The translations under genes and the position numbers were made by a program. The notes under the pieces were generated by a model. It was not told where the DNA came from, made no database searches, and saw only the letters and a list, made by a program, of their open reading frames with translations. A stretch of 64,000 nt of DNA from Isurus oxyrinchus (Eukaryota): assembly GCA_026770705.1 (NCBI GenBank), contig JANJGN010000071.1, positions 2,356,001-2,420,000 of the forward strand, written 5' to 3'. Positions 12,101-47,700 of the stretch are shown piece after piece; position 1 is the stretch's first letter, and each line of letters opens with the position of its first letter.

Positions 12101-15100
12101 GCCATCTGTCTCTTTCCAGAGTGCTTACCCTGGTCCGCCCATTATCACACTCTGCTTAATGTCACCATTAGCACCTCCTTTATCCAATACCACCACTGTT
12201 AACAACCATTTGACCTTTTGTTTATGACATCTTCCACAATCTCTCCATTGCCTCCACCTATCGCTGGTTTTCTATCCAGCTCCACCTGTCCCATCGCCCC
12301 CCCTTAGACAGGATATATTTCACCACATGTCTACTTCCCTTTAGCTCTGAAGAGGAGTCTTACGGACTCCAAACGCTAACCCTGTCTTTCTCTCCACAGA
12401 TGCTGCCAGATGCTCAGAATCAGCTGGATGGACAGAAAGACCAATGAGTGGCTTAGATCAAGAGGAGACGTTCAGCAATTAAAAGGGTTGTTCAGGACAG
12501 TTAGAGAGAGAAAGTTCATCAAGTACGGAGATTGGAAACGAAGACCTGACAGCCTTGTCCTGACAACCATTGAAGGAGAAACTGAGAGCAAAAACAGAAA
12601 GGGAGAGGAAAAATTGGATGTGTGGATAACGTGGACTGAGCGAGGATTGAAGAAAACTGGATTAAAAACAACACGATCCCAATGGCTCCACGGAGACCAC
12701 GGAGACAACAACCAAACAAATGTATCTCCACACTCACAGTCCACAGTGATGGTTATGAACCCCTCCACTGCTCCATGTTCATTCTCTGCCACACACTGAT
12801 AGTCACAACCTGGGCCCCCTCTGACCTATCAGGTTGGGATAAACAATCCCAAGGGTCAATACAAGGAAGAGCTCTCCCTGCTCAATATCACTCATTAGAA
12901 AAGGACCAGTTTTGTCTTCAAGTGATGTTTGTGGGATCTTGCTCTGCACATTATATCCTAATACCGCTAATATAGAATAAAGGATGTCCATACTTACATT
13001 GTACAGTCAGTACGAGGGTCCGCTCCGATGAAACAGATGGATATCTCACTCTGCAGCTGAGAGTGTGTCCGTGGTGTTTGAGTGATGGGATCAGGGTCAG
13101 AACAGAAGTATAGGTCAGAGTGACACCATGCTGAGTTACAGTGTTTGAGACTGATCCAGGTACGTCAGTGGGAGTGTCCCAGGTTAAGACAGGTGCTGCT
13201 GTTCCATTGCACGTTGTGTTGAAGGTGCAGCTTACATCCACACGCTTTCCTGCAATAATTTCAGCAGGGAATATCGTGGGTTTATCTGTGAAATCTAACA
13301 GACAGAGAATGGATCCTTTTAGAGAAATATAACATGAAGCGTCAGCTCAAATAGAAACCACAGTCCCACAAGAGAAAGCACTTTTACAAGGATGATATCA
13401 GAACTGAGATGTTTCAACGATACTGATAGACTGTTAGACACAATTAGAGTGATCAATGGGAGTGGAATACATTTAATCATTGATATTAAAGTGAGTATTA
13501 GAGTTTGCTTTAGGACTGAACTGGAAGTAATCACGAGGTTATTGAGAATTAGACAGTGTGTTATAATAAGCTGTGTTTTGTGTTAATATGTAAACGTCAC
13601 AGTTTGTGTTATTTCCCATTGACTGTTGAATGTGAATTGTTGAGTAATTATAACACAGCACTTACCAGAAATGTGAAGCTGGGTTTCAGGGTAATAGTTA
13701 TGGCTCGGATCATTGTCAAATTCTATTCTGAATAAATAAGGTCCTTCATCTTCCCGTCTGATGCTGTTTATAATCAGGGAACAGTCGCCATCTTTCAAGT
13801 CTCCAGACAGCCGGGTCCGATGGTGGAACCGTGGTAACTCGTGACTGTGATCCTTGGAGTGAAAGGCAATGGGAGCCCAGGGAATCTGATTCTCATTATT
13901 AAACCAGACTCCACCTCGCGGTTGGTTTTCCAGACACGATTGATAACTGTAATGACATGGAATCTGTACACACGAACCTTCCTGCGCTGTCACCTCTCGT
14001 GGAGTGTCACCTTTCCACTCTTGTGAGGGTTCAGCTGGGGAGAGAAATCTCAATATTGAACTCTGGATGGTTTGTGGATCCACTGAACCCGATATTTACA
14101 GATGTGGCTGAATTGGGGGGATGGTCAATACTGAGGAGGACTGCAACAAATTACAGGAAGATATGCATTCTGATGAAGAGTCATACAGACTCGAAACGTT
14201 AACTCTGTCTTCCTCTCCACAGATGCTGTCAGACCTGCTGAGATTTTCCAGCAATTTTTGTTTTTGTTACAGATTTCCAGCATCTGGAGAATTTTGCCTT
14301 TATATTACAGGAAGGTATTAATTAACTTTCAGAATGGGCAGGTCATTGACAAATGAATTTCTACGTTAAATGGGAGGCATTACATTTTGTTCAGGAAAAT
14401 GAGAAGCTTGTTTATTACCTCGAAAATAAGAATCTAATTGGGGTAGAGGAACAACGTGATCTGGGGCAGAAATACAGGAATCACTAACCGTGGGGACACA
14501 GGTTAACAAGGGGATTAAACATACAAACTAAACACTCGAGATTATTTCTCCAGGGATTGAATTGAAAAGTAGAGAAGTGATGTGAAACTTGTCCTGAACC
14601 TTGGTCTGACTGCACCCGGAGTCACGTGTGCAGTTCTGGTCCCCATATTATATAAAGAATATAGAGACACTGGAGAGGGTGGTAAAAAGCTTCACAAGGA
14701 TGATCTCAGCAATGTGAGGCTTTACCTATCAGGAGAGGATGTACAGGCTGGGACTCTGTTCTCTTGAACAGAGAAGGTTGAGGGGTGACCTCATTTGACC
14801 TTTGAAGTAATGAAAGGTTTTGATCGAGTAGACATGGAGAGAGTGTTTCCACTCCTCACAATGAAGAAAACCAGAGGCTGACAATATAACATCCTCACTA
14901 ATAAATCCAATGGGGAATTCAGGAGAAACTTCTTTACCCAGAGAGTGGGGAGAATGTGTGGTTCAAGAATCACTTCATTGGCTGTGAAATTGATTTAGGA
15001 TTGTCCTGAAGTGGTGAAAGGCGCTATGGAAATGTGAGACTTGCTTTTGTATTTTGAAAGCAGGTTTCCAAGGATGAGATGGGAACTGAGAGGTAACAAC

Positions 15101-18100
15101 AATCAGCAGCAACTTTCCTATTTTCAAACTTGGTGGGGAATGTGTCACTGAGCTGAATACACTTTCACTCCCAGACCCTTGAATTGCCAACACTGGGGTG
15201 TGGGTGATGGAGCAGTCCACAGCTCATGGAACCCTGGCTCATCATTCTCTCAGAGATCTGGGTCACTGATCCCATTGCTCTCTATGGGATCTTCCTGTGA
15301 ACAAACTCACTGCCACGTTAGACAGTGATATTGATGGACACTGTCAACACATTTAATCATTCATGTTAAAGTGAGTATTAGAGGTTGCTTTAGGACTGAA
15401 TGGGAGCTATCACCAGGTTATTGAGAATCAGACAGTGTGTTATAATAAGCTGTGCTTTGTGTTAATATGTAAACGTCACAGTTTGTGTTATTTCCCATTG
15501 AGTGTTGAATGTGAATTGTTGAGTAATTATAACACAGCACTTACCAGAAACCTGAAGCTGGGTTACAGGGTAATAGTTATAGCTCGGACCATTGTCAAAT
15601 TCTATTCTGAAAAAATAAGGTCCTGCATCTTCCCGTCTGATGTTGTTTATAATCAGGGAACAGTTGCCATCTTTCAGGTCTCCAGACAGCCGGGTCCGAT
15701 TGTGGAACCGTGGTAACTCGTGACTGTGATCCTTGGAGTGAAAGGCAATGGGAGCCCAGGGAATCTGTTTCTCATTATTAAACCAGACTCCACCTCGCGG
15801 TTGGTTTTCCAGACACGATTGATAACTGTAATGACATGGAATCTGTACACACGAACCTTCCTGCACTGTCACCTCTCGTGGAGTGTCACCTTTCCACTCT
15901 TGTGAGGGTTCAGCTGGGGAGAGAAATCTCAATATTTAACACTGGATGCTTTGTGGATGCATTATCTATCCAATATTTACAGATGTTGCTGAATTGGGGG
16001 ATGGTCAATACTGAGGAGGACGTCAACAAATTACAGGAAGATATACATTCTGATGAAGAGTCATACAGATTCGAAACGTTAACTCTGTCTTCCGCTCCAC
16101 AGATATTGTCAGACCTGCTGAGTTTTTGCAGAATTTTTTGTTTTTGTTACAGATTTCCAGCATCTGCAGTATTTTGCTTTTACATTACTGGAAGATATTA
16201 ATAAACTTGCAGAATGGGCAGGTCATTGACAAATGAATTTCTACGTTAATAAATTTGAGGCATTACATTTTGTTCAGGAGAATGAGCAGCTTGTATCTTA
16301 CCTCGAAAATAAGAATCTAATTGGGGTAGAGGAACAACATGATCTGGGGCAGACATACAGGAATCAGTAAACGTGGGGACACAGGTTAACAAGGGGATTA
16401 AACATACAAACTAAACACTCGAGATTATTTCTCCAGGGATTGAATTGAAAAGTAGAGAAGAGATGTGAAACTTGTCCTGAACCTTGGTCTGACTGCACCT
16501 GGAGTTACGTGTGCAGTTCCGGTCCCCATATTGTAAAAAGGATGTGGATACACTGGAGAGGGTGGTAAAAAGCTTCACAAGGATGATCTCTGCAATGTGA
16601 GGCTTTACCTATCAGGAGAGGATGTAGAGGATGGGTCTCTGTTCTCTTGAACAGAGAAGGTTGAAGGGGTGACCTCATTTGACCTTTGAACTAATTAAAG
16701 GTTTTGATCGAGTAGACATGGAGAGAGTGTTTCCACTCGTCACAATGAACAAAACCTGAGTCTGACAATATAACATCCTCACTAATAAATCCAATGGGGA
16801 ATTCAGGAGAAACTTCTTTACCCAGAGAGTGGGGAGAATGTGTACTTTAAGAATTACTTCATTGGTTGTGAATTGATTTAGGATCGTCCTGAGGTGGTGA
16901 AAGGCGCTATGGAAATGCGAGACTTGCTTTTGTGTTTTGAAAGCAGGTATCCAAGAATGAGATGGGAACTGAGATGTAACAACAATCAGCAGCAATTTTC
17001 CTATTTTCAAACTTGGTGGGGAATGTGTCACTGAGCTGAATACACTTTCACTCCCAGACCCTTGAATTGCCAACACTGGGGTGTGGGTGATGGAGCAGTC
17101 CACAGCTCATGGAACCCTGGCTCATCATTCTCTCAGAGATCTGGGTCACTGATCCCATTGCTCTCTATGGGATCTTCCTGTGCACAAACTCACTGCCACG
17201 TTAGACAGTGACTATACTTCAAGAATTTCTTCATTGTCTGTGAAGTGAATTGTCATGTGCTGAGGTGGTGAAAGTCGCTACAGAAATGCAAGTCATTACT
17301 GTGTCGATTTGCCAGACTTTTAAATGGGGATTAGAGAAATCGATGGGAGTGGATAACCTGATAACATTGATGGACACAGTCAATACATTTTATCATTCAT
17401 GTTAAAGTAAATATTAGAGGTTGCTTTCGGACTGAGCTGGAAGCTACCACCAGGTTATTGAGAATCAGACGGTGTGTTATAATAAGCTGTGTTTTGTGTT
17501 AATATGTAAACGTCACAGTTTGTGTTATTTCCCATTGAGTGTTGAATGTGAATTGTTGAGTAATTATAACACAGCACTTACCAGAAACCTGAAGCTGGGT
17601 TACAGGGTAATAGTTATAGCTCGGACCATTGTCAAATTCTATTCTGAAAAAATAAGGTCCTTCATCTTCCCGTCTGATGTTGTTTATAATCAGAGAACAG
17701 TCGCTATCTTTCAGGTCTCCAGACAGCCGGGTCCGATGGTGGAACCGTGGTAACTCGTGACTGTGATCCTTGGAGTGAAAGGCTATGGGAGCCCAGGGAA
17801 TCTGTTTCTCATTATTAAACCAGACTCCACCTCGCGGTTGGTTTTCCAGACACGATGGATAACTGTAATGACATGGAATCTGTACACACGAACCTTCCTG
17901 TGCTGTCACCTCTCGTGGAGTGTCACCTTTCCACTCTTGTGAGGGTTCAGCTGGGGAGAGAAATCTCAATATTTAACACTGGATGCTTTGTGGATGCATT
18001 ATCTATCCAATATTTACAGATGTTGCTGAATTGGGGGATGGTCAATACTGAGGAGGACGTCAACAAATTACAGGAAGATATACATTCTGATGAAGAGTCA

Positions 18101-21100
18101 TACAGATTCGAAACGTTAACTCTGTCTTCCGCTCCACAGATATTGTCAGACCTGCTGAGTTTTTGCAGAATTTTTTGTTTTTGTTACAGATTTCCAGCAT
18201 CTGCAGTATTTTGCTTTTACATTACTGGAAGATATTAATAAACTTGCAGAATGGGCAGGTCATTGACAAATGAATTTCTACGTTAATAAATTTGAGGCAT
18301 TACATTTTGTTCAGGAGAATGAGCAGCTTGTATCTTACCTCGAAAATAAGAATCTAATTGGGGTAGAGGAACAACATGATCTGGGGCAGACATACAGGAA
18401 TCAGTAAACGTGGGGACACAGGTTAACAAGGGGATTAAACATACAAACTAAACACTCGAGATTATTTCTCCAGGGATTGAATTGAAAAGTAGAGAAGAGA
18501 TGTGAAACTTGTCCTGAACCTTGGTCTGACTGCACCTGGAGTTACGTGTGCAGTTCCAGTCCCCATATTGTAAAAAGGATGTGGAGACACTGGAGAGGGT
18601 GGTAAAAAGCTTCACAAGGATGATCTCAGCAATGTGAGGCTTTACCTATCAGGAGAGGATGAACAGGCTGGGACTCTGTTCTCTTGAACAGAGAAGGTTG
18701 AGGGGGTGACCTCATTTGACCTTTGAAGTAATTAAAGGTTTTGATCGAGTAGACATGGAGAGAGTGTTTCCACTCCTCACAATGAACAAAACCAGAGGCT
18801 GACAATATAACATCCTCACAAATAAATCCAATGGGGAATTCAGGAGAAACTTCTTTACCCAGAGAGTGGGGAGAATGTGTGCTTCAAGAATCACTTCATT
18901 GGCTGTGAATCAGTTTAGGATCGTCCTGAGGTGGTGAAAGGCGCTATGGAAATGCGAGACTTGCTTTTGTATTTTGAAAGCAGGTTTCCAAGGATGAGAT
19001 GGGAACTGAGAGGTCACAACAATCAGCAGCAACTTTCCTATTTTCAAACTTGGTGGGGAATGTGTCACTGAGCTGAATACACTTTCACTCCCAGACCCTT
19101 GAATTGCCAACACTGGGGTGTGGGTGATGGAGCAGCCCACAGCTCATGGAACCCTGGCTCATCATTCTCTCAGAGATCTGGGTCACTGATCCCATTGCCC
19201 TCTGTGGGATCTTCCTGTGCACAAACTCACTGCCACGTTAGTGACTATACTTCAAGAATTTCTTCATTGTCTGTGAAGTGAATTGTCATGTGCTGAGGTG
19301 GTGAAAGTCGCTACAGAAATGCAAGTCTTTACTGTGTCGATTTGCCAGACTTTTAAATGGGGATTAGAGAAATCGATGGGAGTGGATAACCTGATAACAT
19401 TGATGGACACAGTCAACACATTTTATCATTCATGTTAAAGTGAATATTAGAGGTTGCTTTCGGACTGAGCTGGAAGCTACCACCAGGTTATTGAGAATCA
19501 GACAGTGTGTTATAATAAGCTGTGTTTTGTGTTAATATGTAAATGTCACAGTTTGTGTTATTTCCCATTGAGTGCTGAATGTGAATTGTTGAGTAATTAT
19601 AACACAGCACTTACCAGAAACGTGAAGTTATGGCTCGGACCATTGTCAAATTCTATTCTGAAAAAATAAGGTCCTTCATCGTCCCGTCTGATGTTGTTTA
19701 TAATCAGGGAACAGTCACCATCTTTCAGGTCTCCAGACAGCCGGGTCCGATGGTGGAACCGTGGTAACTCGTGACTGTGATCCTTGGAGTGAAAGGCAAT
19801 GGGAGCCCAAGGAATCTGTTCCTCATTATTAAACCAGACTCCACTTCGCGGTTGGTTTTCCAGACACGATGGATAACTGTAGTGACATGGAATCTGTACA
19901 CACGAACCTTCCTGCGCTGTCACCTCTCGTGGAGTGTCACCTTTCCACTCTTGTGAGGTTCAGCTGGGGAGAGAAATCTCAATATTTCCCTCTAGATGGT
20001 TTGTGGATCCACTGAACCCGATATTTACAGATGAGGCTGAATTGGGGGGATGGTCAATACTGAGGAGGACTGCAACAAATTGCAGGATGATATACATTCT
20101 GATGAAGAGTCATACGGACTCGAAACATTAACTCTGTCTTCCTCTCCACAGATGCTGTCAGACCTGCTGTGTTTTTCCTGCAATTTTTCTTTTTGTTACA
20201 GATTTCCAGCATCTGGAGAATTTTGCCTTTATATTACAGGAAGGTATTAATAAACTTGCAGAATGGGCAGGTCATTGACAAATGAATTTCTACGTTAAAT
20301 GGGAGGCATTACATTTTGTTCAGGAAAATGAGAAGCTTGTATCTTACCTCGAAAATAAGAATCTAATTGGGGTAGAGGAACAACGTGATCTGGGGCAGAA
20401 ACACAGGAATCACTAACCGTGGGGACACAGGTTAACAAGGGGATTAAACATACAAACTAAACACTCGAGATTATTTCTCCAGGGATTGAATTGAAAAGTA
20501 GAGAAGTGATGTGAAACTTGTCCTGATCCTCGGTCTGTCTGCACCTGGAGTCACGTGTGCAGTTCCGGTCCCCATATTATATAAAGAATATAGAGACACT
20601 GGAGAGGGTGGTAAAAAGCTTCACAAGGATGATCTCAGCAATGTGGTAGTGTACCCATTAGTAGGAAAACATAATAATTTTCATAGTGGTAATTTAATTT
20701 ATTGTAAGCTAGGAATAGAGGGGTCTTGATANNNNNNNNNNNNNNNNNNNNNNNNNNNNNNNNNNNNNNNNNNNNNNNNNNNNNNNNNNNNNNNNNNNNN
20801 NNNNNNNNNNNNNNNNNNNNNNNNNNNNNNNNNNNNNNNNNNNNNNNNNNNNNNNNNNNNNNNNNNNNNNNNNNNNNNNNNNNNNNNNNNNNNNNNNNNN
20901 NNNNNNNNNAAATATGGCTGGGCTGAATGTTTTGAAGTCTCAGAAAAGAAGCTAAATTTGAAATGTTTAATAGGTAAACATAGCCAGAGTTTTAGAATGG
21001 GAGGTGCGAAAGGAGAATTTGCAATTTCTACATAGTCCTGAATTTCAATGAGGTGCTTAAATGTTACACCTAGTGAAGAGAGGCTAAGGCAAACAGCGTT

Positions 21101-24100
21101 TTTATTATTCACAATTTTACTGAGAAACTTGGTACCATGAAAGATTTCTATTATTGGAAATGTAAAGTCCAATGACATATTGGAACAATGGGGTTTACAT
21201 TCAGAAAGGGAGAAACATCTCTAAATGAGATTAGGTTATGTGTAAGGGAAGGCATTGAAAGATCTACAAGTGTGAAATGCCTCTGTGCCCCTAATTGCTG
21301 TCTGCAAGAACTGAAGGAAAGAAAATTCACTTTGAATTTAACTGTTCAGGGTATTGTGTTACTTCCTCTGAGGCTTTTTAAATCTGCTTGTTTTACTGTT
21401 GCTTTACCAGAGGAGTAACTGGGAGTCAGATTAATTAGGGAAGCTAAGAATTAGCATAGCAGTAATTTGTAGAACTGTGTATGTGTTTAAAATTATTTCT
21501 TTTACTAATAAATGCTGAATTTAGTTTTGCCAAAACCCTCTCGACCTGGTGGACTCATTACTACTGAATTCAAGGGGAACAACTCAACATAAAAATACAA
21601 CTTGCAAAACAGTTGTGGCAGCTGTTCCAAGTTTACTTTGGGATTTGAGCAGCTCAGCTTTTACCGTCTGCTGTGCCATAACACTATCAGGAGAGGAAGG
21701 ACGGTCCGGGCCTGGTTTCTCGTGAACAGAATAGATTGAAGAGGTGACCTTGGGGAGGTGGCTACGATTCTGAAATATGCTGACAGAGTCGACGCACAGA
21801 GAGAAAGTTTCCCCAGGTGGAGAGGAGGAAAAGCAGAGGCAGAAATTACCCCCCTCGGGGTGGGGGAGGTGGGGGGGGGTGTTGCCTGTGCAGGGTTGGC
21901 AGGGGTGGGCGTGAACCCGATTGGTGCCCCCGATCGAGGCTGTGCCGCCATTTGACGTGGGCCGGACAGTTCGGGCCCGCCCAGCGTGACGGGTGCCCGG
22001 GAGCGTGGGCGGGGGAGGGGAGGGGAGGGGGATTCCCTGAGGTGCCTCGGGGAGATGAGCTTCAGGTTTAAGACACGTCCCCTCATGTGACAGTGCCTCA
22101 TGAGCTGGGACATGCTCATCAGTTTTGATGGAACAATTTTGTGTAATGAAGGAAAACTTCAGGAAAGCTCCTCCGGCCTGCGGATGAGGCTCCATGAAAA
22201 CTACAAAGGATGCCTGGAGGTGAGACGAGCAGCCCTGATCCTTGTTTAAATGACTATTTCAATGTCCTTCACGGGCCTTGGACAATTGGGCGTGCAGGCT
22301 GCGACCCCCGCTGAACTGACATTCGAAATGATGCGCAGGGACGTTGGGACATCCGCCCGACATCATTTCACTGTACGCGAGCAGACCCCACCCACACTCA
22401 CCGAGACAAGAATTCCACCCCCCCTCCCCCCCACCCCCCCCCCCCTCCCCCCCGCCACCCCAGCAGGGACCAGCAAGGTATGAAATCCCAGCGGGAATTC
22501 AGGAGGAATTCCTTTCCCCAGGGCTGGGGAAAATGTGCAATTCAGCAATTATCTCATTGTCTGTGAAGTGATTTGGTGCATGCTTGAGGTGGTGAAAGGC
22601 GCTATAGGAATGCAAGTCTTTCGTTTGTTGATTTGTCGGACTTTTAAAAAGCATTAGGTAGACTGATGTGAGTGGATAACCTGATAACATTGATGGACAC
22701 AGTCAATACATTTAATTATTGATATTAAAGTGAGTATTAGAGGTTGCTTTAGGACTGAACTGGAAGCTATCACCAGGTTATTGAGAATCAGACAGTGTGT
22801 TACAATAAGCTGTGTTTTGTGTTAATATGTAAACGTCACAGTTTGTGTTATTTCCCATTGAGTGTTGAATGTGAATTGTTGAGTAATTATAACACAGCAC
22901 TTACCAGAAACATGAAGCTGGGATACAGGGTAATAGTTATGGCTCGGACCATTGTCAAATTCTATTCTGAAAAAATAAGGTCCTGCATCTTCCCGTCTGA
23001 TGTTGTTTATAATCAGGGAACAGTCGCCATCTTTCAGGTCTCCAGACAGCCGGGTCCGATGGCGGAACCGTGGTAACTCGTGACTGTGATCCTTGGAGTG
23101 AAAGGCTATAGACGATGTTCTCCATTCCTCATTATTAAACCAGACTCCATCTCGTGGCTGAATTTTCAAATCTGTTGGGTAACTGTAATTAAATGGAATC
23201 TGTACACAGGAACCTTCCTGCGCTGTCACCTCTCGTGGAGTGTCGCCTTTCCACTCTTGTGACAGTCCAACTGGGGAGAGAAATATCAATATTTAACTCT
23301 GGATGGTTTGTAGATCCACTAGACTCGATATCCACCCTCTCCATCACTGGGGCACGGTGGCTGCAGTGAGGACCATCTACAGGACACACATGGAATTCCC
23401 CAAGGTTTCACAATGGATTGAAGAGAATCCTGGACACAGGAGTGGACAAGTTCATTCTACATTGGCTCATGGTCCTCAGGACCCTGTTTAGTGAAGCCAG
23501 TCTTCCACCCAACACAGTGTCTACAAGATACACAGGGAAACTGTGTAAACATCTCATCTCTCTACACCGACTGGTTTGAGCTTCAGTTTAACTTTCAGTA
23601 TTTTTAAATTTCCATATTGTGGTTGCTATGGTGAAACTGTGCAGGAAGTGTGAGGGCTGGACTCTCTGTCTATTCTGACTGCAGCTGTGATGTAGTCGTG
23701 GTGGTTTTCAGTAAAATGAAACCCTCTGAGCTCCTCCATCCTCGAGGTTTAGGGAGTGAATTCCAGAGCTCAGGCCCCAGGCAGCTGAAGGCCCAGCCGC
23801 CAATATTGGAGTGATGGGAATCGGGGGATGGTCAAGAGGCCGGAATTGGAGTAACACAGAGATCTGGGACGTTGGTTGGGAGAGTTGCAGGAGGTGACAG
23901 AGATAAAGAGTCAGTTTGTGGCAATGGAGGCATTTCAACACAGTGCTCTGAATTTTATGTTTGTGATGTTGTAGGACCAGGAGTCAGAAAACACAGGGGT
24001 GAACGGAGAATGGGGTTTGGTGTGAGTTTGCACATTGGGTCACTGCTGAATCTGAACCCAAACAGAGCTCAGTAAGAATCTTAAGATTCTGCTTGAGCTA

Positions 24101-24391
24101 CAACAAACTTGCCTATCTCTGTAACCTCCTCCAGCCCCTACAACCCTCTGAGATCTCTGCTCTCCCCCCGTTCTGCTGTCAGACAGGGAGTCAGTGTATA
24201 TCAGTGAGCACAGGGGTGATGGGTGAATGGGACTTGGTGTGAGTTTGTACACTGGCTCACTGCTGAATCAGTTCCCAGTCACAGCTCAATAAGAATGATC
24301 TTTTACAAAGACTATTAATCATAAATCTGTCCGAGATGACGATGATATTACCTTGGAGAAGTGACAGGAGGAAGTAAGATTTCCCGATCAT
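5910..24391 (-). CDS. Siglec-like gene A (multi-V, MAG/CD33-like, ITSM-type tail); about 935 aa if all intact exons are joined
   Basis: Exons 24391-24352, 23270-22905, 17950-17582, 15913-15545, 14034-13666, 13294-12998, 10620-10345, 9610-9317, 8289-8193, 7469-7388 and 6158-5910 are all GT-AG and phase-compatible (2808 nt total). V domains show the Siglec hallmarks EGSCVQIPC, CSL and YFFR. An assembly gap at 20732-20909 lies inside the model. Confidence 0.75.
6515..7252 (+). mobile_element. Solo LTR-like element in gene A last intron
   Basis: Terminal inverted hexamers TGTTAT...ATAACA; internal AATAAA; copies at the equivalent position in both gene C tails. Confidence 0.65.
7388..7469 (-). 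CDS. Gene A cytoplasmic exon 1 (RKTAMEERVSGTSDIALTPSPLSVKHQ)
   Basis: GCAG|GAGAAAG ... CAG|GTACAG; 82 nt, phase 2 to 0, fits the TM and terminal exons. Confidence 0.8.
7608..8070 (+). mobile_element. LINE 3' fragment (CR1/L2-group ORF2 C-terminus)
   Basis: CTIYKMHCSNS..LRQHLPNP..SFTVAGS.SWNSL..FKKAAHH-type end; other copies at 51495, 54460 and 58560-59130. Confidence 0.7.
8193..8289 (-). CDS. Gene A transmembrane exon (GRDSSKWTVGLFTAGIMLSVFLAGIFIFICVRK), uncharged TM
   Basis: TTTTTACAG|GTAGAG ... GAAA|GTAAGT; 97 nt; hydrophobic run followed by RK; absent from the ORF track. Confidence 0.85.
8815..8965. repeat. AT-rich ~37-bp tandem repeat
   Basis: Repeated CGATGTAATCTATGTAATATTTATATATAAT-like unit; inverted counterpart at 50665-50850. 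Confidence 0.7.
9317..9610 (-). CDS. Gene A membrane-proximal Ig exon (KPEISQQSECTQRSEGVTCVCVAESNPP...), MAG domain-5-like
   Basis: CAG|ATAAGC ... AAAG|GTGACA; 294 nt, phase 1-1; the C-x8-C-x-C-x4-NP pattern is typical of the last Ig domain of MAG/CD33-related Siglecs. Confidence 0.85.
10345..10620 (-). CDS. Gene A Ig C2 exon (PPQETMVSI...LTCSSESVPP...W...DAGFYCTARN)
   Basis: CCAG|ATCCCC ... CAAT|GTAAGC; 276 nt; canonical Ig Cys/Trp/DxGxYxC; five N-glycosylation sequons. Confidence 0.9.
10745..12410 (+). mobile_element. Penelope-like retroelement, 5'-truncated and frameshifted (RT thumb + GIY-YIG endonuclease + 3' end)
   Basis: FLDL..LSTNIHYKPTD..SSSHP..KDSIPFSQFLRL, then CTSLNLFYCIRCSQCGFLYIGDTKR..LPVACHFN..GTLQPSGLN; degenerate hammerhead-like motif at 12347. 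Confidence 0.85.
12738..12804 (-). pseudogene. Remnant 3' end of the domain-3 C2 exon in gene A (DYQCVAENEHGAVEGFITITVD)
   Basis: Matches the last 22 codons and GTGAGT donor of gene B exons 35312-35593 and 36265-36546; the 5' part and acceptor are deleted. Confidence 0.8.
12998..13294 (-). CDS. Gene A Siglec domain-2 C2 exon (DFTDKPTIFPAEIIAGKRVDVSCTFNTTCNG...)
   Basis: TTAG|ATTTCAC ... CAAT|GTAAGT; 297 nt; extra Cys six residues after the B-strand Cys, as in Siglec domain 2. Confidence 0.9.
13666..14034 (-). CDS. Gene A V-set exon V5 (AEPS type; YLFR with essential Arg)
   Basis: CCCCAG|CTGAACCC ... TCTG|GTAAGT; 369 nt, phase 1-1, open frame. Confidence 0.85.
14170..14204 (+). ncRNA. Minimal type-I hammerhead ribozyme-like motif (Penelope-derived)
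   Basis: CTGATGA-A-GAGTC-ATACA-GACTC-GAAAC-GTT-AACT: intact core boxes, 5-bp stem II, palindromic AACGTT; copies at 16050, 18087, 20099, 33623 and 43458. Confidence 0.6.
15545..15913 (-). CDS. Gene A V-set exon V4 (AEPS type; YFFR)
   Basis: Intact AG/GT sites, 369 nt, open frame. Confidence 0.85.
17582..17950 (-). CDS. Gene A V-set exon V3 (AEPS type; YFFR)
   Basis: Intact AG/GT sites, 369 nt, open frame. Confidence 0.85.
19615..19963 (-). pseudogene. Frameshifted V-set exon (psi-V2)
   Basis: 349 nt: 1-nt deletion near the start (plus strand GAGGTT versus GAGGGTT) gives an early TGA, plus a 19-nt deletion near the 3' end; splice dinucleotides intact. Confidence 0.85.
20732..20909. other. 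Assembly gap
   Basis: Run of N. Confidence 1.
20910..21683 (+). mobile_element. LTR-like element (5' end in or before the gap)
   Basis: Ends CTGCTGTGCCATAACA; homologous to the 6515-7252 family. Confidence 0.55.
21800..22510. repeat. GC/CpG-rich interspersed repeat, possibly a non-autonomous DNA transposon remnant
   Basis: Abrupt GC/CpG-rich block absent from paralogous V introns; a compositionally similar block lies at 4150-4740; family not identifiable by eye. Confidence 0.3.
22905..23270 (-). CDS. Gene A V-set exon V1 (VGLS type; B-strand Cys replaced by Phe; YFFR)
   Basis: CCCCAG|TTGGAC ... TCTG|GTAAGT; 366 nt open frame; CVQIPFNY instead of CVQIPCHY. Confidence 0.85.
24352..24391 (-). 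CDS. Gene A leader exon (MIGKSYFLLSLLQ)
   Basis: ATG at 24391, donor CAAG|GTAATA, acceptor CTTTCACAG before 24431. Confidence 0.85.
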
Positions 24392-24841
24392 TGTCCACTC
24401 CCAGATATTCCATCCACTTCTCACTCTCAAACTGTGAAAGAGAAAGGAGTTAATGAGACCTCACCTCTTGTCCGACAGCTCTCGAGAGATCAGAACTGCT
24501 TTTAAACAATGTCTTCACAGACTAATTTGATTCTCTGTGGGATGATAGGTGCTCTGCAGAGAGTTACAAGGCTTTAAGAAAGAAAAACAATGAAGGACTT
24601 GCATTTCTATAGCACCTTTCACCACCTCAAGACATCCCAAAGCTCATGTCTCTGCACTTCCCTCATCCCTTGAGCTAGAAAGATGTTCTGTACAACAGAC
24701 TTGAGCCTCACACCCAGATCTCAATAATCAGTAGAAATCTTTCAAAGGCATCAATCATTGGAATCTGTCTTTATAAAGTCACAACATCAACAAAGGACGG
24801 TGTTGGTGGTGGAAGTGAATTCCAATCGTTCCGTTACTTAC

Positions 24842-24985: not shown

Positions 24986-25204
24986 AACCAGTGAGAAGAT
25001 CGAGGATGTTTTGCGCTCTCAGCAAAACGTTTACCATGTGATGATCTGTCAGCTCATATTTGGGCAGCTGTAGTCATGAAGCTTCTCCATTGGCTCCGTG
25101 GGATTAGACTCCTGCCCCTCACTTCGGAGGCTGAAACTCAGGCGATAAGAGTTCCCAATACAGGTCTCTGGCCTTATGATACATTTCAACGATCCCTGAT
25201 CATT

Positions 25205-27530: not shown

Positions 27531-28334
27531 TCCTAAGTGCATTCTAGGCACTGCCCAAGGTTCCGCCTGATGTCCGTGTAACAACAACATCATGTACACG
27601 TCGAGAATATTTCTCAGTTTGGTGCAGCAAGACAGTTTTGGAATGGCACCACCACTGGCAGGAGTGTGAAACTACAATGTGACATGTTTACATGGGAAAT
27701 TTCTATTATAAAGATGGGCACAGGAATTTGTATGATAGAACAAATGTGACAACATGAAGTAATGTCTTTGAGCCAAAAATATTTTGTTAAACAGCGAAAC
27801 GAACAACAATCTGGGAAACAGGGAAACAATTTGTTTGGAGATTTGAGAAATTCTCTGCAGCTTAGAGGATAACAGATGTGCTACAGTGCCAGCAATGATG
27901 GGAGTTCATCAGTACAACGTGACATGTTTACATTGATATAGCCAATGAACATAGGAAATTATGATGTGAAAAATTGGTTGCAGGTTTATCTTCTTCAATA
28001 TGTCATGGATGGATGAGACAGCTTTGATAACAGAATGAGATACAGCTGCAATAAACCTCAATTTTAGTCTTTCACACTTGGAGAGTACAATTAGCATCCA
28101 TTCTGAAGGCTGAGTGGATGGGTGGACTGTGCGATGTGTTACAGATTACAGAGACCAACATCCTTGATCCTGGTTCCGCTCTGTGTTTGATGAGATGCTT
28201 GGATCAAAGATTGGGAAAATAAATAATCCTCCTGCATTGATCTGTATCTGGTCTCTCCCTCTATCAATGTCCTGAGGACAGAATTGGGTTCCATGTCCAA
28301 AATCAGACACATGCTTTGACTGCCCATTGAATCG

Positions 28335-30680: not shown

Positions 30681-30774
30681 TGAACAGTCGATGGCCCTTC
30701 AACCACATTCTTGGCACGCAAAGGGTTAACTGTTTTCTAACTGTGCGAGGCAAAGAGCTGCTTTCTCACTTGGT

Positions 30775-32029: not shown

Positions 32030-32069
32030 ATGATCGGGAAATCTTACTTCCTCCTGTCACTTCTCCAAG
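32030..32069 (+). CDS. Gene B leader exon
   Basis: ATG ATC GGG AAA ... CAA G|GTAATA. Confidence 0.85.
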
Positions 32070-34641: not shown

Positions 34642-34711
<70 letters not shown>

Positions 34712-35619: not shown

Positions 35620-35664
<45 letters not shown>

Positions 35665-38357: not shown

Positions 38358-38479
38358 AGCTTTGTACAGCAACAATCTGGTCAGTCAGTGCGGACAAATA
38401 ACGTGTGATGTTGGGTTAAGTGTAATGAAACTGGTCAGTGTCCTGGTTAGAATCACCTTCGTATCAGAGAGGCATTCCA

Positions 38480-39080: not shown

Positions 39081-39096
39081 TTATTCTTTCCATCAG

Positions 39097-39439: not shown

Positions 39440-39789
39440 ATTACATTGATTAACACAAGTGATTAAAATGCTCAGGCTGTTCTGTAGATATTTATTGATT
39501 AAAATTCTTATTTTGCTGCCAAATTCTTGCCTCAAAGAAAAGCTTCTTGTTGTCACATTTTCTCTATTATATAAATTCCTGTGCCCATCCTTATAATAGA
39601 AATTTCCAATGTAAACATGTCACATTGTAGTTTCACAGTCCTGCCAGTGGTGGTGCCATTCCAAAGCTGTCCTGCTGCACAGACACAGTGAGAAATATTC
39701 TCGATGTGTACATGATGTTGTTGTTAAACAGACATCAGGCGGAACCTTGGGCAGTGCCTAGAATGCACTTGGGACAGTGCAGACCATGC

Positions 39790-40920
39790 TCAGAACTGAC
39801 AGTGCAGCGTTTCCTCAGTGCTGACCCTCCGTCAGTGCAGCGCTCCCTCATTACTGTCTCTCTGACAGTGCTGCACTACCTCATTATTGACCCTTTTCAA
39901 GTGCTTCACCCCGTCATCATTGACCTTCTGACCGTGCAGGATTCCCTCATGGCTGACACTCTGACAGTGCAGCACTCCCTGAATACTGACCCCCTGATAC
40001 TGTACCCCTCCATCACTAATGACTTTCCAACAGTTCAGCACTCCCTAGGTACAGACAATCTGACAGGGCAGCATTCCCTCAGTATTCAAACTCCCACTAT
40101 GCAGCTGTCCCTCAGGATTCTCCCCCCCACAGTGCAGCACTCCCTCAGTACTCTCCCTCCCACAGTGCAGCACTCCCTCAGTTCTCTCACTCCCACAGTG
40201 CATTACTCCCTCAGTACTCACCCTCCCAAAGTGCAGCAGTCCCTCAGTACTCACCCTCCCACAGTGCAGCACACCCTCAGTACTCACCCTCCCACAGTGC
40301 AGCAGTCCCTCAGTACTCTCCCTCCCACAGTGCAGCACTCCCTCAGTACTCACCCTCCCACAGTGCAGCACACCCTCAGTACTCACCCTCCCCCAGTGCA
40401 GCACTCCCTCAGTACTCACCTCCCACAGTGCTGTGTGAGTTGTTTAAATCAAGACTGGTGCACAAAGAGGGAGGTTTCAATGCTAAATCATTGAAATCGG
40501 TGAAAATTATTTTTAGGCTTACGAGAACAAGACTTAGTTCCTCAAATCCTTTCTTTAGCAATAACACACAGTACTAGAATCTCTGTTTAAATAAATTCCA
40601 GTTAAACTTTGCCATGAAAGGATATCTTCTCACACTCCTCTCTACCTCAGTACTAACCCTCCCACAGTCCGGCACTCCCTCAATACTGACCCTCCGACTG
40701 TGCAAATCTCACTCAGTACAGACCCGCTGACAGTTCAGCACTCCCTCATTACTGATCCTCTGACAGTGCAGCACTCCCTCATTAAGGACCCTCTTCCAGT
40801 GCAGCACTCCCACATTACTGTCCCTCTGACAGTGCAGCACTCCCACATTACTGACCTTCTGATAGTGCAGCACTCATTCAGTACTGACCCTCACACAGTG
40901 CAGCACTCCCTCAGTACTAT
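39790..40920. repeat. 33-bp minisatellite arrays (inverted paralogue of 25205-27530)
   Basis: CAGTGCAGCACTCCCTCAGTACTCACCCTCCCA units. Confidence 0.9.
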
Positions 40921-41129
40921 ACCCCTGTCAACATGTATCATACGGCCAGAGACCTGTATTGGGAACTCTATCACCTGCACTTCAGCCTCTGAGGTGAGGG
41001 GGAGGGGTCTAATCCCACGGAGCCAATGGAGAAGCTTGATGACTACAGCTGCCCAAATATGAGCTGACAGATCACACATGGTAAACGTTTTGCTGAGAGC
41101 ACAAAACATCCTCGATCTTCTCACTGGTT

Positions 41130-41273
41130 ACCCACTTCCTCATTTTGTCTCACAGTGACACATCCACCCTTTCTAATTAAATACACAGAGGGAGCAGCAA
41201 AGGAAGAGGTCATTCAGCCCAAGCAGAGCGTGTGGGCAGTTCCTCCCCAGGCGAGCAGTCGGACATGTCCTGG
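41130..41273 (+). promoter_or_regulatory. Gene C putative promoter and exon 1
   Basis: CACTTCCTC at 41133-41141; donor CTGG|GTAAGT after 41273. Confidence 0.55.
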
Positions 41274-41723
41274 GTAAGTAACAGAACGATTGGAATTCAC
41301 TTCCACCACCAACACTGTCCTTTGTTGATGTTGTGACTTTATAAAGACAGATTCCAATGATTGATGCCTTTGAAAGATTTCTACTGATTATTGAGATCAG
41401 GGTGTGAGGCTCAAGTCTGTTGTACAGAACATCTTTCTAGCTCAAGGGATGAGGGAAGTGCAGAGACATGAGCTTTGGGACATCCTGAGGTGGTGAAAGG
41501 TGCTATAGAAATGCAAGTCCTTCATTGTGTTACTTTCTTAAAGCCTTGTAACTCTCTGCAGAGCACCTATCATCCCACAGAGAATCAAATTAATCTGTGA
41601 AGACATTGTCTAAGAGCAGTTCTGATCTCTCGAGAGCATTCAGACAAGAGGTGAGGTCTCATTAACTCCTTTCTCTTTCAGAACTTCAGAGTTAGAAGCT
41701 GAGGAAATATCTGGGAGTAGACA

Positions 41724-41763
41724 ATGATCGGGAAATCTTACTTCCTCCTGTCACTTCTCCAAG
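41724..41763 (+). CDS. Gene C leader exon
   Basis: MIGKSYFLLSLLQ; donor CAAG|GTAATA. Confidence 0.85.
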
Positions 41764-44700
41764 GTAATACCATCGTCAGCTCAGACAGATTTATGGTGAA
41801 TAGTCTTTGTAAAAGATCATTCTTATTGAGCTCTGATAGGGAACTGATTCAGCAGTGAGACAGTGTACAAACTCACACCAAGTCCCATTCACCCATCACC
41901 CCTAAACTATCTGACTCCTGGTCCTACAGCATCTCAAACTTAAAATACACATCTCTTTGTTCAAATGCATCCATTGCCTCACACTGCGTCCTTATCTCTG
42001 TAACCTCCTGCAACTCTCCCAACCAACGTCCCAGATCTCTGTGTTACTCCAATTCCGGCCTCTTGACCATCCCCCGATTCCCATCACTCCAATACTGGCG
42101 GCCGGGCCTTCAGCTGCCTGGGGCCTGAGCTCTGGAATTCACTCCCTAAACCTCGGGGATGGAGGAGATCAGAGGGTTTCATTTTACTGAAAACCTCCAC
42201 GACTACATCACAGCTGCAGTCAGAATAGACAGAGAGTCCAGCCCTCGCACTTCCTGCACAGTTTCACCATAGCAACCACAATAAGGAAGTAAAATAACTG
42301 AAAGTTAAACCGAAGCCAAACCAGTCAGTTTAGAGAGATGAGATATTTACACAGTTTCCCTGTGTGTCTTGTAGACACTGTGTTGGGTGGAAGACTGGCT
42401 TCACTAAACAGGGTCCTGAGGACCATGAGCCAATGTAGAATGAACTTGTCCACTCCTGTGTCCAGGATTCTCTTCTATCCATTGTGAAACCTTGGGGAGT
42501 TCCATGTGTGTCCTGTAGATGGTCCACACTGCAGCCACTGTGCCCCAGTGATGGAGGGGGTGGATATCAAGTCTAGTGGATCTACAAACCATCCAGAGTT
42601 AAATATTTGATATTTCTCTCCTCAGTTGGACTGTCACAAGAGTGGAAAGGTGACACTCCACGAGAGGTGACAGCGCAGGAAGGTACGTGTGTACAGATTC
42701 CATGTCATTACAGTTATCCAGCACATTTGGAAAGCCAACCGCGAGGTGGAGTCTGGTTTAATAATGAGAAACAGATTCCCTGGGCTCCCATTGCCTTTCA
42801 CTCCAAAGATCACAGTCACGAGTTACCACGGTTCCACAATCGGACCCGGCTTTCTGGAGACCTGAAAGATGGCGACTGTTCCCTGATTATAAACAACATC
42901 AGACGGGAAGATGCAGGACCTTATTTTTTCAGAATAGAATTTGACAATGGTCCGAGCCAGAACTATTACCCTGTAACCCAGCTTCACGTTTCTGGTAAGT
43001 GCTGTGTTATAATTACTCAACAATTCACATTCAACACTCAATGGGAAATAACACAAACTGTAACGTTTACATATTAACACAAAACACAGGCTATTATAAC
43101 ACACTGTCTGATTCTCAATAGCTTCCAGTTCAGTCCTAAAGCAACGTCTAATACTCACTTTAATATCAATGATGAAAAGCATTAACTGTATTATCAGGTT
43201 ACCACTCCCATCAATCTCTCCTGTCCTGTTTAAAAGTCTGACTTATCGATAAAAGAAAGATGTGCATTTCTGCTGCGCAATTTACCACCTCAGGAGGATC
43301 CAAATCCCTTCACAGCCAATGACATTATTCCTGAATTGTAGTCACAGATGTAAAACACAGCAGGCAGTTTGTGCACAGCAAGATCCAACAAACCACAAGG
43401 TGATAAATCACCCAGATCACTGAGGAAATGAGAAGCCAGTGAACTCAAACCTCTGGTCTGATGAAGAGTCATACGGACTCGAAATGTTAACCCTGTCTTC
43501 CTCTCCACTGATATTATTCTTATTCTTTCCATCAGCACAAACAGCAATTTCCAAGCGGACTCCCATCAGCAGACAGAGTGCAATGAAACATCGGCATGCC
43601 TGCTTCTTAATGTACGGAGAGAAACCTGGAACGAGAGATTCTCCTTCTTCTCCTCAGCAAGCTGAAACTTTTCCTTATACCTGGTGCTCCCCAGTCCTGC
43701 TGTGTGGACACATCATAACCACGGCATTGTCTGGCTGTGTGCAGCCAACATGGTCGAATAGGAATGAACAGAAATGGGACGTTGCTAAACTCTGTTCTCT
43801 GATTGGAATGTGCTTTCTGAATGCTGCACCTTTTTCATGCTGCGATAGATTGTAAGAAGCATTTGGGTTATGAATAAAATTACATTGATTAACTCAAGTG
43901 ATTAAAATGCTCAGCCTGTTCTGTAAATATTTATAGATTAAAATTCTGGTTTTGCTGCAAAATTCTTGGCTCAAAGACATAGCTGCCTGTTGTCACGTTT
44001 TCCAATCAGATGAATTCCTGTGACCATCTTTGTAATAGAAATTTCCAATGTAAACATGTCACATTGTAGCTGCACACACTTGCCAGTGGGTGGTGGAATA
44101 TGAAGGCTGCCTTGCTGCTCAGAAACAGTGAGAAATATTCCTGTTGAATGCGTGAACTTCATGTGTGCATGAGACACAGGCATCAGATGCAATTTTGTTC
44201 AATTGTACAATATTCTTTGGACAGCGCAGCACTGCCTCATTTCAGACCCTCCGACAGTGCCGCAATCCCTTAGTACTGACCCTCTGATAGTGCAGCACTC
44301 CCTCAGTTCAGACCCTCTGACTTTGCAGCACTCCCTCAGTTCAGACCCTCCAACAGTGCAGCACTCCCTCAGTACTGACCCTCTGACAGTGCAGCACTCC
44401 CTCAGTTCAGACCCTCCAACAGTGCAGCACTCCCTCAGTACTGACCCTCCGACAGTGCAGCACTCCCTTAGTACTGACCCTCCGACAGTGCAGCACTCCC
44501 TTAGTACTGACCCTCCGACAGTGCAGCACTCCCTCAGTGCTGACCCACCAACAGAGCAGCACTCCCTCAGTACTGACCGGCCGACAGTGCAGCACTCCCT
44601 CAGTATGACCCACCAACAGTGAAGCGCTCCATCAGTACTGACCCTGTGACACTGCAGCAGTCCCTCAGTGCTGACCCTCCAATAAAGCAGCACTCCCTCG

Positions 44701-47700
44701 CTCCTTATCTTCCAACAGTGTAGCACACCCTAAGTACTGACCCTCCGACATTGCAGCACTTGCTCAGTATTTATCCTCCGACAGCAGATTTAAATATCAA
44801 CCCTCGGAGCCAGGGTAGAAATTTGAAGTTACCAAACAGCAAACAACAAAAGAGAAACAACACATAGTCATGATGAAATGGCCAACAGTTTGATTCTGTT
44901 GTAACACATTGTGTAATTACGCACTCGTTCCTACTGCCTTTCATCATGCCTTTCAGCACCTCTGTACGTTGCAAATGGATTCACAACCAATGAAATAATT
45001 CTTGAAATGTAGCCCTTGTTGTAATATGGGACACACAGCTGAACCCTCACAAGAGTGGAAAGGTGACACTCCACGAGAGGTGACAGCGCAGGAAGGTTCC
45101 TGTGTACAGATTCCTTGTCATTACAGTTATCCATCGTGTCTGGAAAACCAACCGCGAGGTGGAGTCTGGTTTAATAATGAGGAACAGATTCCCTGGGCTC
45201 CCATTGCCTTTCACTCCAAGGATCACAGTCACGAGTTACCACGGTTCCACCATCGGACCCGGCTGTCTGGAGACCTGAAAGATGGTGACTGTTCCCTGAT
45301 TATAAACAACATCAGACAGGAAGATGCAGGACCTTATTTTTTCAGAATAGAATTTGACAATGGTCCGAGCCATAACTATTACCCTGTAACCCAGCTTCAC
45401 GTTTCTGGTAAGTGCTGTGTTATAATTACTCAACAATTTCCATTCAACACTCAATGGGAAATAACACAAACTGTGACGTTTACATATTAACACAAAACAC
45501 AGCATATTATAACACACTGTCTGATTCTCAATAACCTGCTAATAGCTTCCAGTTCAGTCCTAAAACAACCTCTAATACTCACTTTAATATCAATGATTAA
45601 ATGTATTGACTGTGTCCATCAATGTTTTCGGGATATCCACTCCCATCGATCTCCCTAACCCTGTTTGACAGTCTTACATATCGACAAAAGAAAGATTCGC
45701 ATTTCTATAGCGCCTTTCAGCACCTCTGTACGTTGCAAATGGATTCACAACCAATGAAATAATTCTTGAAATGTAGCCCTTGTTGTAATATGGGACACAC
45801 AGCAGCCAATTTATTCACAGGATACTCCCAGAAACAGCAATGTGATCAATAACCTGATCATCTGCTTTAGATGCCGGTTCAGTGATTGGTTCAAATGGAT
45901 TCTCTCCTGCTGGGGACAGGATAGAATTTAAATCTGGCAGATTTCAGAGAAAGTAACAAGCCAGTGTGTCAGGAACTGTGAGCTGCTCCCCCACCCTCAC
46001 CTGGGATTGTCAATTCAATTGTTTCAAAGTGGAAGTGAATTCATCTGAGTGACAGAAACTCCCCTAAGTCTGAAAATAGGAAATTCTCTCCTGATCGTTG
46101 TAATCTCTCAGTTCTGATATCATCCTTGTAAAAGTGCTTTCTCTTGTGGGACTGTGATTTCTATTTGAACTGATGCTTCACGTTATATTTCTCTAAAAGG
46201 ATCCATTCTCTGTCTGTTAGATTTCACAGATAAACCCACGATATTCCCTGCTGAAATTATTGCAGGAAAGCGTGTGGATGTAAGCTGCACCTTCAACACA
46301 ACGTGCAATGGAACAGCAGCACCTGTCTTAACCTGGGACACTCCCACTGACGTACCTGGATCAGTCTCAAACACTGTAACTCAGCATGGTGTCACTCTGA
46401 CCTATACTTCTGTTCTGACCCTGATCCCATCACTCAAACACCACGGACACACTCTCAGCTGCAGAGTGAGATATCCATCTGTTTCATCGGAGCGGACCCT
46501 CATACTAACTGTGCAATGTAAGTACAAACACCCTTCATTCTATATTAGCGGTAATAGGATATAATGTGCAGAGCAAGATCCCACAAACACCACTTGGTTG
46601 AAGACAAAACTGGTCCTTCTTTAATGAGTGATATTGAGCAGGGAGAGCTGTTCCTTGTATTGACCCTTGGGATTGTTTATCCCAACCTGATAGGGCAGAG
46701 GGGGCCCAGGTTGTAACTATCAGTGTGTGGCAGAGAATGAACATGGAGCAGTGGAGGGGTTCATAACCATCACTGTGGAATGTGAGTGTGGAGATACATT
46801 TGTTTGTTTGTTGTCTCCGTGGTCTCCGTGGAGCCATTGGGATCGTGTTGTTTTTAATCCAGTTTTCTTCAATCCTCGCTCAGTCCACGTTATCCACACA
46901 CCCAATTTTTCCTCTCCCTTTCTGTTTTTGCTCTCAGTTTCTCCTTCAATGGTTGTGAGGACAAGGCTGTCAGGTCTTCGTTTCCAATCTCCGTACTTGA
47001 CGACCTTTCTCTCTCTAACTGTCCTGAACAACCCTTTTAATTGCTGAACGTCTCCTCTTGATCTAAGCCACTCATTGGTCTTTCTGTCCATCCAGCTGAT
47101 TCTGAGCATCTGGCAGCATCTGTGGAGAGAAAGACAGGGTTAGCGTTTGGAGTGTGTATGACTCCTCTTCAGAGCTAAAGGGAAGTAGACATGTGGTGAA
47201 ATATATCCTGTCTAAGGGGGGGCGATGGGACAGGTGGAGCTGGATAGAAAACCAGCGATAGGTGGAGGCAATGGAGAGATTGTGGAAGATGTCATAAACA
47301 AAAGGTCAAAGGGTTGTTAACAGTGGTGGTATTGGATAAAGGAGGTGCTAATGGTGACATTAAGCAGAGTGTGATAATGGGCGGACCAGGGTAAGCACTC
47401 TGGAAAGAGACAGATGACCCTCGTGGGGGTGTGGCAGGGGGAGGGGACGGTGGAGGGAATAAAGATCGAAAATAGACTAAAATCTGCGGATAAAACAATC
47501 AATAAAAATGGAAATGAATTTCAAATAATAATAATGAAAATAAGTGGAAAAAAATTAACAAATAAAACAATTAAAATGAATATATAAAAAAAGGGGATCA
47601 AAAAGCAGTGAAGATTCGTGGAGCAAGTTCATGATCTGAAATTGTTGAATTCAATATTCAGTCCGGAAGGCTGTAAAGTGCCTGGTCGGAAGATGAGGTG

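Follow-up and report, generated by a model that had tools for sequence, protein, structure and literature searches.

To our knowledge, research on Siglecs has been almost entirely confined to mammals, whose lectin head consists of one V domain stapled to domain 2. A stretch of 64,000 nucleotides from the genome of the shark Isurus oxyrinchus (GenBank assembly GCA_026770705.1, contig JANJGN010000071.1, positions 2,356,001 to 2,420,000 of the forward strand; this whole stretch is referred to below as the window) carries eight V-set exons of one family, and raises the question of how several lectin domains could be held together in one receptor. The window is a cluster of CD33-type Siglec genes, closest to lamniform sequences, and comprises three genes (designated A, B and C) and the leader of a fourth. 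Comparison of the sequences leads us to propose, with a probability of roughly 0.6, that internal V domains (those downstream of the first V domain) copy the acceptor cysteine of domain 2, so that V–V junctions can be stapled by disulfide bonds.

Exon organization of the Siglec-like genes

The V-set exons, five on the minus strand and three on the plus strand, were distinguished by six-frame reading, DNA alignment and a splice-site scan. Five of them are 369 nucleotides (nt) long, while the others measure 366, 375 and, in the case of a broken copy, 349 nt; AG and GTAAGT border every one of the eight. All seven intact exons (366–375 nt) are of phase 1-1, so that leader-to-V, V-to-V and V-to-C2 joints all keep the reading frame. 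The codon split across the exon joint encodes Val in exons that continue with GLSQEW and Ala in exons that continue with EPSQEW, and the two types are hereafter called VGLS and AEPS exons, respectively. The leader exon is present in the window in exactly four exact copies (identified with a 42-nt pattern that includes the GT donor). Each of the three VGLS exons is located 0.7–1.1 kb downstream of a leader copy, and none of the AEPS exons is so placed. It is plausible from these sequences that the residues VGLS complete the signal peptide. Another candidate leader (MRCLHSF...), situated approximately 240–290 bp 5′ of each V1 exon, was ruled out by the RNA contigs described below and by the four-fold exact match 0.7–1.1 kb upstream.

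Gene A (minus strand), as assembled, is composed of a leader, V1, four more V exons and a C2 exon, gene B (plus strand) of a leader, a single V exon and C2, and gene C (plus strand) of a leader, V1, V2 and C2. Gene C is a clean example of the layout discussed here. The exons are as follows.

24352–24391, minus strand: gene A leader exon, 40 nt, phase 1, encoding MIGKSYFLLSLLQ (exact match including the GT donor; the same sequence fronts the VGLS exon in RNA contigs)
22905–23270, minus strand: gene A V1, VGLS type, B-C loop PTDL without Cys, Phe in place of the B-strand Cys (alignment, splice scan)
19615–19963, minus strand: gene A V2, AEPS type, broken, 349 nt, stops in the spliced phase (splice scan)
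17582–17950, minus strand: gene A V3, internal type, AEPS start, extra Cys in PSC, intact, phase 1-1 (alignment, splice scan)
15545–15913, minus strand: gene A V4, internal type, extra Cys in QSC, intact (alignment, splice scan)
13666–14034, minus strand: gene A V5, internal type, extra Cys in QSC, intact (alignment, splice scan)
12998–13294, minus strand: gene A first C2-set exon, 297 nt, with the acceptor Cys pair C-TFNTT-C (sequence reading)
32030–32069, plus strand: gene B leader exon (exact match)
32773–33147, plus strand: gene B sole V exon, VGLS type, B-C loop SSNL without Cys (alignment, splice scan)
34007–34303 (start exact, end approximate), plus strand: gene B first C2-set exon, C-TFNTT-C (sequence reading, homologue mapping)
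41724–41763, plus strand: gene C leader exon (exact match)
42626–42994, plus strand: gene C V1, VGLS type, B-C loop PAHL without Cys (splice scan, alignment)
45039–45407, plus strand: gene C V2, internal type, AEPS start, extra Cys in PSC (splice scan, RNA contigs)
46221–46517, plus strand: gene C first C2-set exon (joined to the V donor at 45407 in all four runs with RNA-like contigs)

Mapping of a catshark homologue onto the window revealed that genes A and C extend into further immunoglobulin (Ig) exons, a transmembrane exon and tail exons. These two genes (5900–24400 on the minus strand and 41700–56900 on the plus strand, respectively) are mutually inverted copies on either side of gene B.

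Siglec features of the predicted proteins

The cysteines and other residues diagnostic for Siglecs were located by alignment with human CD33 domains 1-2. In a close homologue from Cetorhinus, protein P0167, the Cys of the motif GSC corresponds to C36 of CD33, the B-strand Cys to C41, the Cys of GDC to C101, the Arg of FFR to R119, and the two cysteines of SCTFNTTC to C163 and C169. The Siglec cysteine pattern (C36, C41, C101, C163 and C169) is thus matched by the shark sequences, the exception being gene A V1, which is devoid of the B-strand Cys. An initial annotation of the window, made from its letters alone, had stated that every V domain keeps the essential Arg; indeed, the motif FFRIEF or LFRIEF was found in all eight V exons, in the broken copy (19963–19615) only in its own genomic frame and not in the spliced phase. 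In each gene the V-set exons are followed by a C2-set exon, and the homologues carry precomputed Pfam matches to V-set and C2-set domains. An inter-domain disulfide between V and C2 is a described feature of Siglecs, e.g. Cys46-Cys172 of Siglec-6 (PMC10122656). Together with the CD33 alignment, this upholds the premise of the initial annotation that the GSC Cys of the V domain bonds to the extra Cys of domain 2 in Siglecs.

Judging from their sequences alone, the tail exons of genes A (approximately 5913–6158, minus strand) and C (56593–56838, plus strand) encode TEYAQI, which resembles an immunoreceptor tyrosine-based switch motif (ITSM). Every tail exon holds TEYAQI or a close variant of it, and a sequence resembling an immunoreceptor tyrosine-based inhibitory motif (ITIM), LFYANI, is confined to the second tail exon of gene C. 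Gene C has two tail exons (53597–53842 and 56593–56838), with the ITIM-like and ITSM-like motifs occurring together only in the second.

An extra cysteine in internal V domains

The B-C loops of the three leader-adjacent V exons read PTDL, SSNL and PAHL and contain no Cys, whereas the five downstream V exons read PSC or QSC, with a Cys seven residues after the B-strand Cys (position +7). In each of the three genes, the first C2 exon reads C-TFNTT-C, its second Cys being at +6 from the B-strand Cys. The +7 Cys of an internal V domain precedes the C-strand Trp by exactly 10 residues, by sequence count, and so does the acceptor Cys of domain 2 (CD33 C169). This distribution of cysteines over first V, downstream V and C2 exons had been described in the initial annotation, and its coordinates, splice sites and motifs all proved correct, even though one of the five downstream exons (19963–19615) is frameshifted. 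The split of three versus five exons within the window rests on recent copies.

The two V exons of gene C differ at 20 of 369 nt, and 13 of these differences fall within the first 109 nt. Five of them are concentrated within 7 nt, at the codons for Ala-His in V1 and Ser-Cys in V2. The identity of the two exons amounts to 88.7% in the first 115 nt and 97.2% in the remainder. A similar profile was obtained when gene C V1 was compared with the internal V exons (approximately 89% over the first 115 nt and 95–98% over the last 254 nt), and the 3′ two-thirds of this exon match internal V exons as closely as internal exons match one another. Gene C V1 is therefore a mosaic that has kept the front end of a first V exon, which suggests gene conversion ending just past the B-C loop. 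It follows that the Cys contrast outlasts homogenisation, in agreement with the earlier observation that the V exons of gene C are nearly identical and yet retain it.

Conservation of the extra cysteine in sharks and rays

Relatives of the window genes were collected by a full HMMER search with an AEPS exon and by a word-indexed search with a two-V match, yielding 257 proteins. The close relatives all come from sharks and rays, where the NCBI pipeline has named them Siglec-12, Siglec-13, Siglec-10, CD33-like or MAG-like. A hidden Markov model was built from the V exons of the window, and domains were kept if they scored at least 60 bits and contained the motif C-x4-C. The resulting set comprised 184 V domains, i.e. 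177 from annotated shark and ray proteins and the 7 intact exons of the window.

A Cys at +7 was found in none of the 142 first V domains and in 34 of the 42 internal ones. The other residues occurring at this position are of 13 kinds in first V domains and of five kinds in internal V domains. Three cysteines per domain are present in 120/142 first V domains, and at least four in 40/42 internal V domains. Internal V domains with the +7 Cys were identified in ten species (Scyliorhinus canicula, S. torazame, Mustelus asterias, Cetorhinus, Carcharodon, Hemiscyllium, Rhincodon, Chiloscyllium, Mobula and Hypanus), whose annotated proteins contain from two to four V domains in series. Thus, the correlation between Cys and position extends to relatives, with eight internal V domains falling outside it.

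The pairing of VGLS with first and AEPS with internal V exons, also drawn in the initial annotation, holds within the window but not elsewhere, because internal V domains of Carcharodon start with VGLSQEW and have nevertheless kept PSC. The Cys therefore tracks the position of the domain and not the AEPS motif. On this sequence evidence, internal V exons appear to be an old, position-specific class in sharks and rays.

Transcript evidence for V-to-V joining

Four sequencing runs with RNA-like contigs were compared over positions 42150–47150. A GT..AG joint from the V donor at 45407 to position 46221 was present in all four and sets the start of the C2 exon. In run X2, TTCACGTTTCT stands directly ahead of three contigs starting at the AEPS exon; it consists of the 11 bases that precede the final G of a V exon. 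As this is the end of a V donor exon, these contigs contain a V-to-V splice junction. When the three run X2 contigs that reach the boundary before the AEPS exon are considered, the V donor end is found in all and the leader in none. In a separate group of contigs the last 30 bases of the leader are joined to the VGLS exon (before 42624). The RNA contigs are short and possibly derived from paralogues, so they demonstrate that these joints exist in the family without resolving the gene of origin. The initial annotation had named leader-to-AEPS joining, with V never joined to V, as an outcome that would speak against chained V domains; what the contigs contain is the V donor joined to the AEPS exon. 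A search for homologous proteins with a single V exon returned only three short proteins and no transcript fragment spanning a V–V junction.

Structure prediction

The natural V-V-C2 protein P0167 of Cetorhinus was used as the construct for folding. With an alignment of 83 rows, AlphaFold2 gave a predicted local distance difference test score (pLDDT) of 84.4 and a predicted template modelling score (pTM) of 0.69. In this model the block-mean pLDDT is 80–85 at residues 131–150, which include the V1–V2 junction, and approximately 89–91 at residues 161–180, which contain the B-C loop of V2. The V2-C2 part superimposes on domains 1-2 of CD33 and Siglec-10 with a Z score of 19.3 and a root-mean-square deviation of 2.8–3.1 over 207–210 residues; the structural aligner picked the V2-C2 pair every time, so this superposition does not bear on the V1–V2 geometry. 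Prediction of a complex between V1 and V2-C2 of the same protein scored 0.29 and 0.27, against a mark of 0.34, and counts neither way.

Condition of gene A

In the V2 exon of gene A (19963–19615), a 1-bp deletion affects a run of C that directly follows the acceptor, and a 19-bp deletion is located ahead of the donor; in the spliced phase the exon runs into stops. Either this is a pseudo-exon or, as regards the 1-bp change, an assembly error may be responsible. In V1 of the same gene, TTT (Phe) is found where all other copies have TGT for the B-strand Cys; as a result, the core B-E disulfide is absent and the E-strand Cys has no partner. The internal V exons of gene A are borne by repeat units of 1.9–2.0 kb that are 92–97% identical. 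An assembly gap separates V1 from V2:

20732–20909, no strand: assembly gap in the V1–V2 intron of gene A, interrupting no exon (run of N)

The flanks of this gap are unique sequence, out of register with the repeat unit that bears the internal V exons.

A proposed disulfide-stapled stack of V domains and its alternatives

In the Ig fold, the donor Cys is positioned at the bottom of the domain, in the A′-B turn, while the B-C loop is at the top, and these two ends meet at the junction of successive domains. In an ordinary Siglec, the GSC Cys just before strand B, at the bottom of the V domain, bonds to the Cys that domain 2 carries in its B-C loop, at the top of that domain. We hypothesize that V exons were duplicated in tandem downstream of the first V exon. 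In the resulting V-V-...-C2 chain the last V domain would take the Cys of domain 2 and, this Cys being already used, every internal V domain would present an equivalent B-C-loop Cys to the V domain ahead of it. Each domain junction could then be stapled with no Cys left free. Since the phase 1-1 exons are plug-compatible, any number of internal V domains would give an in-frame, fully paired ectodomain with the essential Arg in each V domain. The +7 Cys is unlikely to pair within its own domain, because the donor Cys lies at the bottom of the domain and the B-C loop at the top.

We infer the V–V disulfide, the rigidity of the stack and its multivalent binding of sialic acid. The broader proposal is that of an elasmobranch modular lectin stack, in which a dedicated internal V exon with its own acceptor Cys would allow any number of putative sialic acid-binding domains to be placed between V1 and C2, each junction being stapled; to this we give even odds. 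If it is true, the valency and reach of the receptor would be set by exon copy number and splicing. A simple sequence rule, in which a position-specific Cys imitates the acceptor Cys of domain 2, would account for the way in which cartilaginous fish could have receptors with two to four or more serial lectin heads and no free cysteines. The +7 Cys may also serve as a marker for telling first from internal V exons during annotation of difficult, repeat-rich loci, and protein engineers may find the idea of stapled plug-in Ig modules of interest.

The four-V ray proteins P0002 and P0159 alternate two types of domain, V3 carrying the +7 Cys and V2 and V4 carrying a Cys in the motif KDEC. The chain model leaves the pairing in these proteins unexplained.

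Several observations weigh against a V–V staple. Eight of the 42 internal V domains do without the +7 Cys: P0001 V2 and P0158 V2 are without any extra Cys, so that the donor Cys of the domain ahead of them would be left unpaired, P0156 V2 has its extra Cys elsewhere, P0166 V2 is a recent copy of V1 that has acquired a Cys in its F-G loop, and the V2 and V4 domains of the two ray proteins have instead the KDEC cysteine, located in the C-C′ region after the C strand and thus, by Ig topology, at the wrong end of the domain. Stray extra cysteines at other sites occur in 21 of the 142 first V domains. On a tree of V domains most of those with the +7 Cys group together as mutual nearest neighbours, and phylogenetically independent pairs provide four well-supported contrasts, none of them contrary to the rule, for which the sign test is not significant; the statistical weight is overstated by the raw counts. 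Outside elasmobranchs, V-V Siglec-like proteins, including P0083 and P0059, which we take to be mammal-like relatives of Siglec-12, have no B-C-loop Cys in V2, and hence a V-V Siglec can exist without such a Cys. The V-to-V junction is supported by three short contigs of a single run, maybe originating from paralogues elsewhere in the genome, and another AlphaFold2 model of P0167, based on a 15-row alignment (pLDDT 68.8, pTM 0.47), has a low-confidence linker and is too weak for domain orientation. The tree, the small number of contrasts, the proteins from outside elasmobranchs and the two shark domains without any extra Cys would also fit an explanation in which the +7 Cys is a lineage marker inherited from one old ancestral exon, either free or bonded in another way (e.g. 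between chains, in covalent dimers). We consider this rather unlikely, given that the site is occupied by 13 different residues in first V domains, with Cys in none of them, and yet is Cys in most internal V domains of both sharks and rays. The Cys was retained in an exon that is otherwise homogenised with a first V exon, and also where the N-terminus is VGLS; in its absence the V domain ahead would have a donor Cys with no partner, whereas with it the number of cysteines is even. Its distance from the C-strand Trp, identical to that of the domain-2 acceptor Cys, likewise speaks for a role in the junction. The argument for the staple rests on this long conservation at an otherwise variable site.

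The number of V domains used at a time has to be considered as well. Phase 1-1 throughout would keep any subset of V exons in frame, NCBI models of related sharks show isoforms that differ in V number, and the broken V2 of gene A would need to be skipped, all of which would suit a set of cassettes that are alternative or mutually exclusive and are used singly, offering a choice of lectin heads but no chain. This appears improbable in view of the RNA contigs joining a V donor to an AEPS exon, the run X2 contigs that place a V donor and never the leader before that exon, and the annotated proteins of ten species with serial V domains; moreover, a lone AEPS V domain following the leader would hold an unpaired Cys. 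The damage to gene A raises a different doubt. With its V2 exon broken and the core Cys of V1 lost, this gene as assembled cannot produce the five-V rod to which the reasoning of the initial annotation would lead. The two deletions in V2, the Phe in V1, the near-identical repeat units and the gap with non-matching flanks could all indicate that the five-V array is a very recent amplification, decaying or mis-assembled, with pseudo-exons and no working receptor. We give little credence to this explanation, as V3, V4, V5, the C2 exon and the downstream C2-type, transmembrane and TEYAQI tail exons are open and have good splice sites, and skipping of V2 would preserve the frame. The Cys rule itself is independent of gene A, being seen in gene C and in ten other species.

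Relationship to known Siglecs

The window genes share several features with CD33-related Siglecs of known structure (CD33 domains 1-2, PDB 5IHB and 7AW6; Siglec-5, 2ZG2; Siglec-10, 9O6J), i.e. the donor Cys five residues before the B-strand Cys, the B-E intrasheet Cys pair, the essential Arg in strand F, and the second Cys of domain 2 at +6 from the B-strand Cys. The likeness extends to the ITSM-like tail of genes A and C and, in the second tail exon of gene C only, to the ITIM-like motif. The known members have one V domain, whereas the shark genes insert extra V domains between V1 and C2, each with an acceptor-type Cys in the B-C loop.

Two V-set domains are known in the mammalian Siglec-12 (S2V; PMC6288428). 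The shark genes resemble it in that a single leader precedes a tandem V-set pair, after which come C2-set domains and an inhibitory tail, and this tandem layout is the reason why the NCBI pipeline calls many shark proteins Siglec-12. The features of a two-V-set Siglec found here are one leader per gene, phase 1-1 exons, RNA contigs that contain a V-to-V junction and, in ten species, V-V proteins among the annotated ones. Unlike in Siglec-12, the internal V domains of sharks and rays form a separate class, repeatable up to three or four times and bearing the +7 Cys. The absence of this Cys from mammal-like V-V proteins argues, at the level of sequence, for an origin independent of mammalian Siglec-12.

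Automatic annotation of elasmobranch genomes already includes multi-V Siglec-like proteins (Cetorhinus P0167, Carcharodon P0165, Scyliorhinus P0151 and Hypanus P0002) with the same leader, the same succession of V1, internal V and C2, and the +7 Cys. There is no difference in kind between these and the window genes; what the window contributes is a further species and a locus whose internal array, as assembled, has four copies. The multi-V layout is therefore not a new kind of system, two-V Siglecs being known and the shark layout being present in automatic annotation. We found no paper on shark Siglecs, on the multi-V family or on its Cys rule.

Other features of the window

The fourth copy of the leader lies at the left edge of the window, and the V exon of that gene was not found within the window:

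1467–1506, minus strand: fourth leader copy (exact match)

A second C2-type exon is present in full copies in gene B, while genes A (12690–12800, minus strand) and C (46716–46830, plus strand) hold only its 3′ part (...AENEHGAVEGFITITVE). It looks truncated in genes A and C because RNA contigs reaching 46716 run upstream into a sequence that is absent here.

An Rfam scan of the window gave no match. Long minisatellite arrays are located at 25000–27600, 39700–41100, 44200–44730 and 53150–53500, and translate as ...HSLSTDPPTVQ... in several frames. RNA-like contigs stack on positions 44321–44654 with very high summed depth, and this segment is probably a genome-dispersed repeat. Positions 60400–63975 are occupied by a low-complexity tract of approximately 3.6 kb, which is strongly strand-skewed (GC skew up to 0.98) and contains an open frame of 1191 codons composed of Pro/Ser/Leu/His repeats; most probably this tract represents a simple satellite rather than a gene.

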